Sequence record: OU343167.1 | DNA length: 64,000 nucleotides | Strand: one strand, 5' to 3' | Part shown: positions 8,401-57,012 of the stretch, in pieces | Numbering within the stretch: the stretch's first letter is position 1 | Layout of the letters: each line of letters starts with the position of its first letter | Program-made: the position numbers and the translations under genes | The notes under the pieces: model-generated | The model's input: the letters and a program-made list of their open reading frames with translations, nothing else | Databases searched by the model: none | What the model was told of the DNA's origin: nothing

Positions 8401-9270
8401 ATCAACGCCTTAATGGGTGCATGCTTCCTTAAAGATAACTACACCTACCTTAAAGATGCATTAGGACGCGATCCAACAGACGTAGATCTTTACATCGCTC
8501 ACTTCATGGGACCAGGTGGTGCACGTAAGTTCTTGACTCGTAATCAGGATACCATCGGCGCATCGGTCTTCCCTGAAGCAGCATCTGCTAACCGACCGAT
8601 CTTCTACAAGAAAGGTGGACAACCTCGTACTCTCGGGGAAATCTATCAAATGTTCGAAGAGAAGATTGCAAAGCATCGTGGTGGAGCTGAAGGTAGTTCT
8701 GTAGCTACACAGGAAGCGGGTAAAACCATGACTCCGGAAGAGGCGACAGAAGAACAAGCCAAGGCTAATGCTAAGGCGTCTGCTGCCGAACTTTGGAATA
8801 CTGATGATAGTAACAATGCTGGTAATGCAGCGGTTGCTCGTGAAGAAGCATACAGTGCCACTGGTACTGCTGCCCAAACACCGGTACTTCCTGGTATTAC
8901 TCCAATGAACCCCGTGGGTGGAACAACTACTAGCGGAACTAATCCATCTGCTGATAGTGGCGGTAATGTTATCCAAGCCCAACAAGAAGCAGCTCTTCAA
9001 GCAGCACAGCAACAGAACTCGACTCGTCAAGCTGAAGTACGTCGTAATAACGAGAAGGCTCAACAGATCGATGATATCCAAGCTGAGCAGCTTAAGACGC
9101 TAATTGAGATGCGTGATCATCTCAAGCGTTTGGTACAACTGAACGAACAAAAGGACAGTAGTATCAAAGAAGCTTCGAAAACCCAAGCCGGAGGAAATAA
9201 TAGTATGACCTCCACGTTAATGAGAACGACCGCGGCTCAAAATCGCCCGTCACCCCTCTCGTTAACTTAA
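2500..9270 (+). CDS. Large virion-associated peptidoglycan hydrolase / tail-tip lytic transglycosylase (phiKZ gp181-like)
   Basis: About 2256 aa; C-terminal SLT domain (ASLESG catalytic Glu, [27 protein letters not shown]) at about 8200-8690; divergent from gp180-like gene as in phiKZ; ATG 2500 preferred because of the GGAG RBS. Confidence 0.9.
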
Positions 9271-9277
9271 TCAATGG

Positions 9278-9305
9278 AGCCTCCCTTCGGGGAGGCTTTA
9301 TTTTC
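9278..9305 (+). terminator. Intrinsic terminator hairpin AGCCTCCC-TTCG-GGGAGGCT plus T tract
   Basis: Perfect 8-bp stem, UUCG loop and T run directly after the gp181-like stop. Confidence 0.85.
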
Positions 9306-9325
9306 CGCTAAGAAGGGAAATCAAA

Positions 9326-11302
9326 ATGGCAACAGATGTTAAGCCCATTTGGTTGCGCCAAGCTTTCTTATTACCTATTAATGACAATAAGAACTCGTAT
9401 GGTTCTCAGACCAAACGGCGTTACGCTAACTCGGCTGCTTTCAAATTTACAAATACGTCGTTGGGTGGTAGTTTCGCTATTAACCCTCTCCCACAATACA
9501 CACGCTATGCTGATATCCGTCAGCCTGGTCGTGGTCGTACCTATGAAGATCGTTTCTTAGGTATGGGTCGTTACTATTCGGAAGCACATGACGATACTAA
9601 ACAAGAAGTACACATGTCGTTTGGTGTTCCACGTTATTCGAGTTGGACCTCGTTCTTCACGAACTTCTATGATCGTTCAGCTGCTGGTTTAGCTAATACC
9701 GGCGTTACATCCGATCTTTGGTACAACCTTGGTAACGTAACAGGTTATTTCATCACCCTGCCCCTTCAACCATTTATTCTTGGGGTAACTGGCGTATCTC
9801 GTGTTATTAGCTTCTTGACTAAATCGCAGCCTTCTAAGTGGTTCTATTTTAAACCAACTATGCACGCATACTGGTCGTCTGTGAATACATTGGCTAACGA
9901 GTTCGCCATCGCCCTGGGTATGGTTCCTCGTATTCTAGATGATTCTCAGCGGCCATTAGAAGACCCAGGCCACCGGGTAGGGTTAGATGACGTTAAGCGA
10001 ATGCATGAAATCTTCCCAGGTTTCTTCCGTCCAGATGGCGGTGTCGATGTAATGTCTTTGGCTGGCCGTACGCAGCGCATGTCAGACCAAGCTCAAAAAT
10101 CAATGCGAGCAATGGCTGAGAAAGCACGTACCTTAGCAGAACTCCGGGCAGGTATCGAATCTGAAATGGCTAAAGCTGTAACAGACCCTAAACCTGGAGC
10201 AGATGCGCGTGATTATTTCTTGAAGTATTTAGAAGCAGATAAGAAACCATCCGAGAAGAATGGTGTTATCGATACTGAAAGTTTTAGCAGCTGGGGCGAG
10301 TTGAAGAACGTGTACGACTTCGTTGTAGGTGCACAGCGGGATGGTTCTCAGTTCGTTACATTCCGTGTCGACTATAATGGCGAAGTATCCGAATCCTTTA
10401 CTAACACTACACGTGATGTGGGTGTTGTACAAACCTTGAATACGAAAGTAGGTGAGGGCCGCGCAGCATCGTTTGACTTCATGGGTGGTAATATCACTGA
10501 AGGTGTTGGTGCTGTTACGGATATGCTTAAAGGATTTATTTCAGGAGCACTAGACTCTGTTAACTTATCCGGTCTTGAGACTTTGGCTGGCGCAGCTTTC
10601 GTTGATGCACCTGAGTACTGGGAATCGGCAATGGCGTCCTTGCCATCTGCCTCGTATACTGTTCAATTGATCTCTCCTTATGGAAATAAAATATCCAGGT
10701 TCATGAACATATACGTACCACTAGCCATGATTCTCCCAATGGGATTACCAAGGTCAGCTGGTCGAAGTGCTTACACCTCTCCGTTCATCTGTCAGATTTT
10801 CCATAAAGGTCGAGTACAGAGACAATTGGGGATCGTGGATAGCATTCAAATCCGTCGTGGTGTCGGTAACGTTGGTTGGAACGCAGAACACGAAATGCTT
10901 GGTTGCGAAGTAACCTTTAGTGTTAAAGACCTATCTAAGTTAATGCATATCCCACTGAAGGCTGGCTTCGCTAGTCCAAGTTGGTTGGGTACTGCTGGTC
11001 GTGCTATTTCTGCTACAGCTGGTGAAGCCGTTGCTGGCGATGGTGGTATTGCTACTGCGCTTGCTCTTACTGACGGAGCGGTGTGGGATGAACAAAGTCT
11101 GTTCCAAGATTACGTGTCGACTCTAACATCGCAATCGTGGGCAGATTTCTATTACGCTGGTAAACGTTTGAATCTTAACCTGACTCGTGCAGTTCAAAGT
11201 TTCAAGTCCTGGCGTAGTCCTTCGAACCTAATGTCTTGGGTTCTCGATGGTGAGGTCGCCCGTACGGTCTCTGCCTTCGCTCAAACTTCTGATCGCTTTT
11301 AA
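9326..11302 (+). CDS. Virion structural protein, baseplate/tail-tip associated (phiKZ gp182-like)
   Basis: 658-aa ORF with AAGGGA RBS directly after the gp181-like gene; assignment mainly by synteny. Confidence 0.65.
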
Positions 11303-11318
11303 TACAGGAAACGCAATA

Positions 11319-11789
11319 ATGTCTATCATTCGCAAAATCGCTCTGAAACTCCTTGGTGTTGAATCCGTACTGGAACTGGCCCGTTCTGAAATTAAAGGTA
11401 ATGACCTGGCTCAGCTCGCATCGACTCTTCCGGTTGATACTCTGACCAATCTGTTGGTTGGTAAGTCCGGCGTTCGTAACTTCGCCGAACTGGCTACCGG
11501 TTATCTGGAAGCTGAACAGTATCGTGGACAGAACCTGGAAGCTGAACTGCGTAAACTAGTTCGTAAATACACCGCTGGTGCACGCATCAATGCGTCCATT
11601 GAAAATATCGCAGTCAATGCCCTGATTGGTGGTGTGGCTGAAGTTGAAAACAGTAAGGAACGCAATATTCTGAAGCGTAAGGCCGCTGCCATGGCGACTA
11701 TTCGTGCACAGATGCCGGGTATCGCTAAAGCTGACGGTAACTACGCTGTAGAACTGCTTCTGCAAATTGTTAAAGTCCGCTACTCTTAA
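11319..11789 (+). CDS. Hypothetical protein, co-transcribed with structural genes
   Basis: ATG 11319 with AGGA RBS; tight spacing with neighbours. Confidence 0.7.
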   Translation: MSIIRKIALKLLGVESVLELARSEIKGNDLAQLASTLPVDTLTNLLVGKSGVRNFAELATGYLEAEQYRGQNLEAELRKLVRKYTAGARINASIENIAVNALIGGVAEVENSKERNILKRKAAAMATIRAQMPGIAKADGNYAVELLLQIVKVRYS

Positions 11790-11798
11790 GGTGAACTG

Positions 11799-12380
11799 AT
11801 GAAATGTCTGGACTGGGCTCTCAGCGTAGAGAGTCAAGATGGTGTCGCCCAACAGGTAGACGCTAGTAACGTTGAATCCGAAACCGAGGTTAAAGATCTC
11901 GATCAAGGTAATCTGGATGTGGATAATGCTAACGCTGAATCCCAACCGGATGATGTTAAGGCTAGTACCACTGTAGACATCTCTGTTGAACAACTGGAAG
12001 ATGGTCAGGTGTCTGGTAGTTCTGGTGGTAAGACGATCGATGCTTACGGCGTTGATGAACTGTCCGGCGCACCGAAGCGTATTGTAATCTCTGGTTTTGA
12101 TGCTTCTACTAACAAAGCTGCTGAACCCGGTGATAACAAACTGGAACTGGTTATTCTACTTCAAAATGGAGTAATCCCAGAAGTTGGTATTAATGGGGTA
12201 ACCGTAGAAGATCTACTGACAGCTTCGATCATTGTATTCGAAGGTTTCCAATCGGGTAAGTTTGCCTGTGAAGAAAATGCCAAAGCATTGTTCCACATGA
12301 ACGCTGCACGTGAACTGATTCGCGCTCGACTGGAGCGTCGTCAAGCACAAGGCACTGAAGGTACCTACGAAGGTAACTAA
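11799..12380 (+). CDS. Tad1-like (Thoeris anti-defence 1) nucleotide-signal sponge domain with acidic N-terminal extension
   Basis: C-terminal LQNGVIPEVGINGVTVEDLL..FEGFQSGKFACEENAKALFHMNAARELIRARLERRQAQGTEGT matches the recalled Tad1 pattern FQKG..K...HGV...DLL..V.DRL.SFQAGPFSSRENA.AL...EEA..W...R...R..R.V.GT. Confidence 0.75.
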   Translation: MKCLDWALSVESQDGVAQQVDASNVESETEVKDLDQGNLDVDNANAESQPDDVKASTTVDISVEQLEDGQVSGSSGGKTIDAYGVDELSGAPKRIVISGFDASTNKAAEPGDNKLELVILLQNGVIPEVGINGVTVEDLLTASIIVFEGFQSGKFACEENAKALFHMNAARELIRARLERRQAQGTEGTYEGN

Positions 12381-12387
12381 TATAAAT

Positions 12388-12410
12388 GCCTCCCTTCGGG
12401 GAGGCTTTAT
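12388..12410 (+). terminator. Intrinsic terminator GCCTCCC-TTCG-GGGAGGC-TTTAT
   Basis: Same hairpin as 9278; closes the gp182-like to Tad1-like operon. Confidence 0.85.
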
Positions 12411-12418
12411 GTTCCATT

Positions 12419-12445
12419 AAAAAATATTTCAAATCTATATCACAG
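12419..12445 (+). promoter_or_regulatory. Putative early (virion RNAP) promoter AAAAA-N-TCTATATCAC
   Basis: Variant of the phiKZ early TATATTAC motif with upstream A tract, placed just after a terminator. Confidence 0.6.
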
Positions 12446-12551
12446 GTATGCACTAGAGATTAACATCTTGAGGGCATTACCATGTAACAGCTAACACAAT
12501 ATCCATTCGCGAGAATGACAAGTTAATTCCTTTAATTGAAGGTAGTAAAAA

Positions 12552-13046
12552 ATGAAAGAACAAAACATCGACCACAATAAACCTTATACTTACGTGGTCA
12601 GTGATTCCGAAGGCAACATGCGTGTACTGACTACTCTCGGTGACGAGCTACAAGTGCAGATCGACTATGCCGTGGGCACGGGAGGCAAAGCCAAAGTAGA
12701 ACACATTGAAGAAGGTATTCGTGGCCTGTGCCATTCGTCTACCTCCACTCGTCTGCTCCGTGCAACTGTTCCAGGTTTCTACAAGATGCTTGAAGGCATC
12801 ATGGGTAAGATCGGTCGTGCAATGGCCGAACCCGAGAACTGGACAACTGGTAACAATGGTCGTCTGGCCTTCCATATCGAGACTCTGTTCGGAGCCGATA
12901 AGAAGTTCTGGCCGTTGATCACCCAGAGCGTTTACGAACGTCTGCAATATGACGGTTACGTCAGCGTGGATGTACAGGTAGCGGAAGACGAAGAACAACC
13001 TATCAAGTTGGTCACTCGCTTTGGTATTCCTGCTCGCATGGTCTAA
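12552..13046 (+). CDS. Hypothetical protein
   Basis: 164-aa ORF with GAAGG RBS downstream of the early promoter motif. Confidence 0.7.
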   Translation: MKEQNIDHNKPYTYVVSDSEGNMRVLTTLGDELQVQIDYAVGTGGKAKVEHIEEGIRGLCHSSTSTRLLRATVPGFYKMLEGIMGKIGRAMAEPENWTTGNNGRLAFHIETLFGADKKFWPLITQSVYERLQYDGYVSVDVQVAEDEEQPIKLVTRFGIPARMV

Positions 13047-18680: not shown

Positions 18681-18708
18681 ATAAAGCCTCCCCGAAGGGA
18701 GGCTATTA
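18681..18708. terminator. Bidirectional terminator AGCCTCCC-CGAA-GGGAGGCT between convergent genes
   Basis: UUCG loop on the minus strand; A/T tracts on both sides. Confidence 0.8.
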
Positions 18709-29511: not shown

Positions 29512-29540
29512 TAAAAATTATCTTACATCTATATTACCTA
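29512..29540 (+). promoter_or_regulatory. Putative early promoter AAAAA-N-TCTATATTAC
   Basis: Exact TATATTAC core with upstream A tract at the start of the + strand accessory block. Confidence 0.7.
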
Positions 29541-42759: not shown

Positions 42760-43069
42760 TTTAGACAATAACTTCGAGCATGTTATTTTTAAATATGGCG
42801 ATCTAACAGACTGTATATCGATACTAGACCGTAAAGGTAGGGTTGACAATACCTATTCCATTACAGTCGAGTTGGATGACTTGTTCGATGATGAATGGTT
42901 AGTTACAATTCAGGCTAAACCGAACTGCCGTCGCTTCCTAAAGTTCAAACGGTATTGGTTTAGATACAACTCAGCAACAGGTCGTTTTGCTGGCGATCCA
43001 TTCTTCATTGCCGGGTTAAGAAAACGTTTTATTCATATCAAAACACCATCTGGCATATCGCTTCCCTAA
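42737..43069 (+). CDS. Hypothetical protein
   Basis: GGAGGT RBS; stop embedded in hairpin 43060-43078. Confidence 0.6.
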   Translation: MELTIPLSLDNNFEHVIFKYGDLTDCISILDRKGRVDNTYSITVELDDLFDDEWLVTIQAKPNCRRFLKFKRYWFRYNSATGRFAGDPFFIAGLRKRFIHIKTPSGISLP

Positions 43070-43135
43070 GGGGAGGCTTTATGCCTTTTTTTATTTTCCT
43101 AACCAATCCTGTAGATTATTACAATCTGAGGATAT

Positions 43136-45047: not shown

Positions 45048-45110
45048 TGGTACATTTGGCCCTCCCTTCGGGGAGGGCTATATGTCGTTTTTTTTTATTT
45101 ACTTACGCTA

Positions 45111-45136
45111 AAAAATATCTCAGATCTACATCATGT
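45111..45136 (+). promoter_or_regulatory. Putative early promoter AAAAATATCTCAGATCTACATCAT
   Basis: Same architecture as the 12419/29512/56986 motifs; follows a terminator. Confidence 0.55.
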
Positions 45137-50763: not shown

Positions 50764-50789
50764 GCCTCCCTTCGGGGAGGCTTTATTTT
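50764..50789 (+). terminator. Intrinsic terminator GCCTCCC-TTCG-GGGAGGC-TTTATTTT
   Basis: Identical to 9279 and 12388 hairpins. Confidence 0.85.
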
Positions 50790-56985: not shown

Positions 56986-57012
56986 AAAAAAGATTTCAAA
57001 TCTATATTACTC
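56986..57012 (+). promoter_or_regulatory. Putative early promoter AAAAAAGATTTCAAATCTATATTAC
   Basis: Exact TATATTAC; nearly identical to the 12419 motif. Confidence 0.7.

Follow-up and report, generated by a model that had tools for sequence, protein, structure and literature searches.

Introduction

The structurally characterised Tad1 proteins CbTad1 (7UAV/7UAW/8SMD) and CmTad1 (8KBB-8KBD) share a fold in which an N-terminal antiparallel sheet is followed by two C-terminal helices. The Tad1 preprint describes both as hexamers, arranged as a trimer of dimers, with two trinucleotide sites at which the hexamer interface is needed, and it reports dinucleotide spectra that vary between Tad1 homologues. 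Short-form Tad1 proteins are about 125-138 aa long, lack a propeptide and are mostly prophage-encoded. Acb2, which shares the Pfam Acb2/Tad1 hairpin name, likewise sequesters cyclic nucleotides.

In phiKZ, Tad1 has been linked to the virion. gp184 belongs to the virion proteins; its sites of cleavage by gp175 have been verified, and it is found at the inner capsid surface (PMC11297242). The density assigned to it lies in the vertex-binding complex and fills a gap between gp86 and a capsid hexamer; the piece that was modelled consists mostly of beta-strand and does not reach the length of the cleavage product (PMC11297242). Injection of gp184 into cells was detected by western blot (PMC10449902). 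AntiDefenseFinder detects a Tad1 in phiKZ, and a transposon study (2025 preprint) identifies the phiKZ Tad1 as gp184 and finds it non-essential, with orf184 insertions of near-normal fitness. The same preprint states that the head protease frees the C-termini of gp93 and gp184/Tad1, which are then injected, and a 2026 review describes Tad1 as being injected by phiKZ and as blocking CBASS and Thoeris. For 201phi2-1 gp280, the sequence record bears the remark “identified using mass spectrometry”. A gp184 homologue is absent from the Goslar capsid structure. The primary citation for the activity of phiKZ Tad1 is Li et al. (Nature 2024), whose 2023 preprint contains nothing on phiKZ.

Here, we analyse a window of 64,000 nucleotides from sequence record OU343167.1, in which window position 9300 corresponds to position 195300 of OU343167. 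An earlier note, made from the letters alone, had proposed that the window encodes a Tad1-like sponge with an acidic extension that is made late, packaged, matured by the head protease and injected, and it regarded this as a new delivery mode. The novelty does not hold, as packaging of gp184, its cleavage by gp175 and its injection are already published (PMC11297242, PMC10449902, 2025 preprint, 2026 review). We therefore compare the locus with phiKZ and with the wider Tad1 family.

Results

A Tad1-like gene closes a run that begins with a virion gene

The window is 100% identical to Pseudomonas phage vB_PaeM_phiLBG22 over the 3.8 kb tested, and PS119XW and PA1C, which are ~302-kb Pawinskivirus phages with P. 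aeruginosa as host, have 99.8-99.9% nucleotide identity to this region. The ORF singled out by the earlier note, at 11799-12380 on the + strand, is real: it encodes 193 aa, begins 10 nt past the stop codon of the gp183-like gene and has a good ribosome site, AAGGTGA, 5-11 nt 5' of its ATG. Among the annotated Pawinskivirus records checked, the gene is a “hypothetical protein” in PS119XW, PA1C, phiHQ, BRkr and HHBS36_1; the phiLBG22 record is without annotation and the HPP-Temi record is without a call for this gene. The locus comprises the following features:

9279..9304, + strand: intrinsic-terminator-like hairpin and T-run that separate the gp181-like gene from the gp182-like gene (dG -21.1 kcal/mol, z -4.4)
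9326..11302, + strand: gene opening the run; its 658-aa product is a gp182-like virion structural protein (PHROG 3181, E 1.9e-244; PS119XW annotation; syntenic with PHIKZ182)
11319..11789, + strand: gp183-like small gene, no family match (start taken from the PS119XW annotation; the mechanical ORF has its start at 11247)
11799..12380, + strand: long-form Tad1 gene, phiKZ gp184 orthologue, 193 aa plus stop
12388..12413, + strand: intrinsic-terminator-like hairpin (7-bp GC-rich stem, TTCG loop) and T-run, 8 nt past the stop (folding, phiKZ counterpart)
12420..12443, + strand: AT-rich early-promoter-like motif ending in TATATCAC, 5' of the gp185-like gene (recurrence, phiKZ equivalent)
12552..13046, + strand: gp185-like gene, 164 aa, no family match, opening the next transcription unit (ORF, PS119XW annotation)

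The gene for a gp181-like protein (2264 aa) lies 5' of the run, and a thymidylate kinase gene follows a few genes downstream. The order of gp181-, gp182-, gp183- and gp184-like genes, followed by thymidylate kinase, recurs in phiKZ, PS119XW, Noxifer and two metagenomic contig sets, and the gp182- to gp184-like order is common to PhiPA3 and 201phi2-1.

The hairpins at 9279-9296 and 12388-12405 are identical, and the latter folds with a dG of -19.9 kcal/mol (z -5.3). Because the former separates the gp181-like from the gp182-like gene, the run starts at the gp182-like gene, in agreement with the earlier note. The note had also claimed that the run is free of terminators and early-type motifs and that both follow the Tad1-like gene, and the sequence bears this out: within 9326-12380 we found only one weak 6-bp hairpin, TATAT(T/C)AC is absent from the + strand between 2476 and 12380, and the hairpin at 12388-12405 and the early-promoter-like motif at 12420-12443 lie 3' of the gene. 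The same hairpin-plus-motif arrangement is present on the 3' side of phiKZ gp184.

The terminal TATATCAC of this motif is one mismatch from the octamer given in the earlier note. A degenerate 24-nt pattern, derived from three sites of the window that resemble promoters, matches four sites in the window (the other three at 29514, 45111 and 56987) against 0.04 expected. The exact string TATATTAC occurs four times in the window against 2.5 expected, which is chance level; thus, only the 24-nt motif is significant. Early promoters of these phages have AT-rich motifs ~10 nt 5' of the start site, while their late promoters are too short for recognition from sequence (PMC7598289). A sigma-70 promoter scan gave fewer matches than shuffled sequences and is uninformative, which is no surprise for a phage with polymerases of its own, and Rfam gave nothing credible in 9000-12700. 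A small RNA has been described 5' of phiKZ gp182 and of 201phi2-1 gp277 (PMC11512511), and the hairpin at 9279..9304 sits where these relatives have this 5'UTR-derived RNA.

A Tad1 domain occupies the C-terminal part of the protein

When all PDB sequences were searched with phmmer, the top match was phiKZ gp184 (8y6v chain I, E 2.9e-36), with residues 75-193 aligned to gp184 residues 112-230. CmTad1 (8kbb) was matched at E 1e-7 and the CbTad1 entries 7uav, 8kbh and 8kbe at E about 7e-3. A profile search returned 1254 relatives, and the best 120 of these were used for the alignment, the profile and all residue counts given below. The profile of these best 120 of 1254 matches near full-length CbTad1, with E values of 5e-23 to 7e-24 across Tad1 chains.

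An AlphaFold model of the monomer, made with the 120 aligned sequences and superseding a single-sequence model with a mean pLDDT of 41.7, has pLDDT >90 for residues 76-190. The model has three strands (79-85, 92-98, 116-121) and two helices (136-152, 158-184), the same fold as in CbTad1 and CmTad1. By contrast, most of residues 1-72 have pLDDT <50, and this stretch is predicted to be disordered. In Foldseek searches of the PDB, all 20 matches with E<=0.001 are Tad1 proteins (probability 1.0, target TM-scores 0.57-0.78). In BFVD, the fold matches a 230-aa protein that is 53% identical, with an rmsd of 1.0 over 117 columns; this length and identity are as for phiKZ gp184. With sequence matches to solved Tad1 proteins, a confident model and Tad1-only fold matches in the PDB, which was the structural check that the earlier note had proposed, we have very high confidence that residues 76-190 constitute a Tad1 domain. 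Of two strings quoted in the note, FQSGKFACEENAKAL is found at residues 150-164 of the protein and the other is absent from the window.

Precomputed Pfam tables and UniRef names assign the protein to PF24729, Acb2_Tad1_hairpin (Acb2/Tad1 hairpin); local scans of the protein with Pfam-A, NCBIfam and PHROG gave no named family. A weak nitrosocyanin match scored 22.8 bits where the cut-off is 142.85; it covers the acidic stretch, and we attribute it to composition. Acb2 chains were absent from the PDB matches by phmmer (E<=10), by the profile (E<=0.01) and by Foldseek (E<=0.001). Sequence and model thus place the protein on the Tad1 side of the Acb2/Tad1 family.

The acidic extension carries two candidate protease sites at conserved positions

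The protein can be divided into four parts, the third containing the fourth:

11799..11831, + strand: N-terminal peptide, residues 1-11, ending at candidate site 1, S9-V10-E11 (W6 and E11 invariant in six named orthologues)
11832..11990, + strand: acidic disordered spacer, residues 12-64, ending at candidate site 2, S62-V63-E64 (pLDDT <50, net charge -12.5)
11991..12377, + strand: predicted mature protein, residues 65-193, 129 aa (core pLDDT >90, Tad1 matches, pocket residues kept)
12024-12368, + strand: Tad1 core, residues 76-190 (pLDDT >90)

In residues 1-75, D and E make up 24% and K and R 4%, and the net charge of residues 1-64 is about -13.5. Both of the S-V-E sites listed in the earlier note are found, as S9-V10-E11|S12 and S62-V63-E64|Q65. 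Thus, the note was right to call the extension acidic and S-V-E-bearing. Its estimate of ~75 extra residues is too high because short forms already carry 12-27 residues ahead of the core; by comparison with these forms, the true excess is about 62 residues. Such Tad1-length relatives, 125-148 aa long, account for 62 of the best 120 of 1254.

For the protease sites, we kept the S/A/G-x-E motif as defined in the earlier note. The extension contains two matches against 1.8 expected on shuffling (P=0.59). Because the number of motifs is at chance level, the argument for protease sites rests on their position. When the core domains were placed in a neighbour-joining tree, a single clade held 54 of the 58 long forms. 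An S/A/G-x-E motif is present at the E11 column in 53 of these 54 proteins, at the E64 column (within one column) in 50, and at both in 49, while the residues between the sites vary. Neither site is found in the four unrelated long forms outside the clade. In phiKZ gp184, the aligned motifs are S-L-E and A-I-E. The proposal that the S-V-E motifs are head-protease sites is supported, as both align with S/A/G-x-E motifs of gp184 and of nearly all related long forms.

Cleavage after E64 would leave 129 aa with 11 residues ahead of the core, where most short forms have 13. A gene for a gp175-type protease lies outside the window and is seen in PS119XW, whose nucleotide identity to the window region is 99.9% and in which the head maturation protease gp208 is 59% identical to gp175 over the full length (E 2e-117). 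We also considered the propeptide as a general packaging module that might be joined to further proteins. When a profile made from five propeptides was run on 1.84 billion representatives, it recovered only members of this family plus two acidic proteins of repetitive sequence, and we rejected this idea; the same profile detected no propeptide on any other ORF of the 64-kb window.

phiKZ gp184 has an additional segment

The Tad1 domain of phiKZ gp184 is about 55% identical to that of the window protein and is encoded in the same genomic slot. gp184 likewise has an acidic N-terminus with S/A/G-x-E at both aligned positions. However, gp184 is 230 aa long and has, between site 2 and the core, a segment of ~50 residues without a counterpart in the window protein. 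We have very high confidence that the product of 11799-12380 is the Pawinskivirus orthologue of phiKZ gp184, previously unannotated.

The ~50-aa segment is also missing from the PhiPA3, 201phi2-1 and Phabio proteins, and most of the long forms among the best 120 of 1254 relatives are built like the window protein and have an extension that is 81-87 aa long. By this alignment, the segment is a feature of the phiKZ genus and not of the clade. None of the 8y6v chains is among the Foldseek matches (E<=0.001) to the window Tad1 domain. Because of this, and because the modelled gp184 piece is mainly beta-strand, the capsid-bound piece of gp184 is probably the ~50-aa segment and not the Tad1 domain. 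As the window protein is without this segment, its retention in the capsid may differ from that of phiKZ gp184, and it may be carried as free cargo inside the head instead of being anchored to the capsid.

Two other Tad1 proteins of jumbo phages have a different architecture. Noxifer gp200, encoded in the same slot, has the short form (134 aa) and is without the acidic propeptide or the sites, and in Burkholderia phage FLC9_gp131 the Tad1 domain is fused to an N-terminal cyclophilin-type domain.

The gcADPR pocket is conserved and the trinucleotide site is replaced

Residues were mapped with a gapless HMMER alignment anchored on the residue numbers named in the Tad1 preprint. This preprint reports that mutation of CbTad1 F82, N92, R109 and R113 disrupts binding of gcADPR and 2',3'-cGAMP. 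In this alignment, these residues correspond to F150, N160, R177 and R181 of the window protein. CbTad1 and CmTad1 thus share the four residues of the gcADPR/dinucleotide pocket with the window protein, and the C-terminal G-x-E-G-T tail, whose CbTad1 counterpart forms a lid, is kept as well. Short-form Tad1 proteins are otherwise only 24-28% identical to the window protein. In the best 120 of 1254 relatives, the pocket N, R and R are invariant and the aromatic position is F or Y in 118; it is C in the other two, which are short forms.

The trinucleotide site follows a different pattern. As described in the same preprint, the phosphates of cyclic trinucleotides are held by CbTad1 R90 and T97 (CmTad1 R88 and T95), and mutation of these residues markedly reduces cA3 binding. 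The equivalent positions in the window protein are E158 and F165. Across the 58 long forms, R or K is never found at the first position, nor T at the second; of the 62 short forms, 15 have R or K at the first and 19 have T at the second. Judged by these alignments, the Arg/Thr pair is a trait of the studied short forms and not of every Tad1 family member. In addition, the CmTad1 interface residues K96, Q98, E99, M102, W103 and K106 correspond to H166, N168, A169, E172, L173 and A176.

Because neither the trinucleotide pair nor the CmTad1 hexamer-interface residues are conserved, the oligomer and the ligand range may differ from those of the studied Tad1 proteins. With the pocket residues kept, E158 and F165 in place of the trinucleotide pair and the hexamer-interface residues replaced, we predict a narrower range, with binding of gcADPR and possibly of dinucleotides, which could still occupy the conserved gcADPR pocket, and no canonical trinucleotide site. 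The earlier note had included CBASS signals without distinction; for cyclic trinucleotides, E158 and F165 at the binding pair speak against this claim. A phiKZ nlp1 mutant with tad1 is sensitive to a CBASS system signalling through cA3 and is rescued by Acb2, and this sensitivity agrees with the predicted lack of a trinucleotide site.

Discussion

Based on the sequence comparisons and on analogy with phiKZ, we consider it likely that the Tad1-like gene encodes a sponge precursor with an acidic propeptide, which is packaged, cut and injected. In this model, the gene would share a transcript with the virion genes that precede it, gp182-like and gp183-like, as the layout of the three genes between two identical hairpins indicates. 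The precursor would enter the prohead, as expected from its orthologues, where the gp175-like protease would cut after E11 and E64, as the conservation of the sites suggests, and strip off the acidic part. A 129-aa protein of ordinary Tad1 size would remain inside the capsid and, when the next cell is infected, be ejected together with the DNA, a step that has been shown for phiKZ gp184 only. In the infected cell, the sponge would sequester Thoeris gcADPR, and possibly some cyclic dinucleotides, at the dimer-interface pocket ahead of phage gene expression. Cyclic trinucleotides would probably remain unbound at the canonical three-fold site, given the replacement of the pair that binds them. 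The mechanism in the earlier note is, in effect, the published view of the orthologue; it is partly supported here, being right in outline and doubtful for trinucleotide CBASS signals.

The alternatives to this model concern where the protein acts and what it binds. The protein could be a sponge that acts only in the cytoplasm of the producing cell, with an acidic tail that stays uncut and plays no part in packaging. The predicted disorder of the extension and the chance-level motif count are in line with this idea, and the 134-aa short form in the same slot of Noxifer means that the slot alone implies no packaging. However, both sites are kept in position in 49 of the 54 clade members while the intervening residues vary, and they align with sites of gp184, in which cleavage sites have been verified (PMC11297242). 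Together with the mass spectrometry note for 201phi2-1 gp280 and the injection of phiKZ gp184 (PMC10449902), these observations make a purely cytoplasmic sponge very unlikely. At the other extreme, the Tad1 fold could have been co-opted as a cement at the inner vertex, making the protein a purely structural minor capsid protein without sponge activity. This idea draws on the gp184 density in the vertex-binding complex (PMC11297242) and on the position of the gene in a run of virion genes. Yet, a cement needs no ligand pocket, and the pocket is kept in the best 120 of 1254 relatives, packaged or not; phiKZ tolerates transposon insertions in orf184 with near-normal fitness; gp184 leaves the capsid on infection (PMC10449902); the resolved piece of gp184 is unmatched to the Tad1 domain in the fold search; and the window protein is without the phiKZ-specific segment. 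We regard a structural role of this kind as the least probable of the alternatives.

With regard to ligands, the packaged sponge could be as broad as CbTad1 and CmTad1 and counteract Thoeris as well as CBASS, including systems with cyclic trinucleotide signals. Tad1 proteins are reported to bind gcADPR, several dinucleotides and trinucleotides, the 2026 review has the phiKZ Tad1 blocking both defences, and the shared gcADPR/dinucleotide pocket is conserved in the window protein. These points are countered by E158 and F165 at the trinucleotide pair, with R/K or T at the respective positions in 0 of 58 long forms, by the replacement of hexamer-interface residues required for the trinucleotide site, and by the cA3 CBASS sensitivity of the phiKZ nlp1 mutant that still has tad1 and is rescued by Acb2. 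Moreover, Tad1 homologues differ in their dinucleotide spectra. We therefore consider this broad, two-pronged activity unlikely.

Returning to the packaged, narrower sponge, we tentatively suggest, with confidence short of even, how it may apply to the long forms as a whole. The packaged long forms may represent a single jumbo-phage lineage directed at Thoeris, i.e. at gcADPR and perhaps dinucleotides, in all members of which the trinucleotide site, and probably the hexamer too, has been lost. The majority, the window protein among them, would be free cargo, loaded by way of the 11-residue peptide and the acidic spacer and cut at the two conserved sites to ordinary Tad1 size, while the anchoring in phiKZ would be a genus-specific addition.

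The head-loaded anti-defence proteins internal protein I of T4 and Dar of P1 are also delivered with the DNA, and in T4, a short N-terminal peptide directs loading and is removed by the head protease. These packaged proteins block restriction-type nucleases and not signalling molecules; the likeness lies in the working principle.

A virion-delivered immune-signal sponge is already in the literature, and the data reported here refine the phiKZ story in several respects. The candidate protease sites are conserved across 54 relatives, and the predicted mature size is that of an ordinary Tad1; the trinucleotide pair is replaced in all 58 long forms, and the phiKZ-specific segment is missing in the protein analysed here. 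For Pawinskivirus, a gene recorded so far as a “hypothetical protein” now has a name and a likely role. Because these P. aeruginosa phages are considered as therapeutic candidates, knowing which defences they would pre-empt may help in reading host-range data.

GC-rich hairpins and early-promoter-like motifs in the window

Two types of short element recur in the window. The first is a family of near-identical GC-rich hairpins, which is present in six copies (0.05 expected by chance), in every case on the + strand.

GC-rich hairpin copies in the window
9279-9304, +, GC-rich hairpin, between the gp181-like and gp182-like genes
12388-12405, +, GC-rich hairpin
18687-18702, +, GC-rich hairpin
43061-43076, +, GC-rich hairpin
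45061-45076, +, GC-rich hairpin
50765-50780, +, GC-rich hairpin

The hairpin at 9279-9304 has the properties laid down in the terminator scan's stated criteria, yet it is missing from that scan's output. Its position is the site of a conserved 5'UTR-derived small RNA in relatives. The second element is an AT-rich 24-nt early-promoter-like motif with four sites in the window vs 0.04 expected.

Early-promoter-like motifs in the window
12420-12443, 24-nt motif
29514-29537, 24-nt motif
45111-45134, 24-nt motif
56987-57010, 24-nt motif

At two places (12389/12420 and 45061/45111), a hairpin is followed by the 24-nt motif with a gap of ~15-35 nt. Similarly, in phiKZ, a terminator-then-early-promoter cassette is found downstream of gp184.

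Annotation of the Tad1-like gene and its relatives

A search of the protein encoded at 11799-12377 and of the short Tad1 relatives against a local copy of Pfam-A found no family; precomputed tables assign PF24729 (Acb2_Tad1_hairpin) to the same sequences. On the opposite strand, a 145-aa ORF (11556-11993, -) overlaps the start of the gene and further antisense ORFs are present; the 145-aa ORF is without supporting evidence, and homology is entirely on the + strand. In Pseudomonas phage HPP-Temi (L005:904-2122), a Tad1-like gene with 89% protein identity is uncalled in the deposited annotation, which instead lists two ORFs, one of 99 nt and one of 1095 nt, the latter being antisense to the gene. 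This is likely a mis-annotation.

Tad1 domains in other jumbo phages

In Burkholderia phage FLC9, gp131 (L009:3302-4318; 338 aa) has a C-terminal Tad1 domain and, as judged by eye from the translation, an N-terminal region resembling cyclophilin-type peptidyl-prolyl isomerases. In this jumbo phage, the N-terminal addition to the sponge domain is of another kind than that in the window protein. The gp200 protein of Pseudomonas phage Noxifer (L008:3920-4324) is a short Tad1 form of 134 aa without the acidic propeptide and without S/A/G-x-E sites. Its gene occupies the same slot as the window gene, i.e. 3' of the gp182- and gp183-like genes and 5' of thymidylate kinase. Because the short form is in the same slot, the putative packaging extension is either lost or absent in a member of this one gene neighbourhood.
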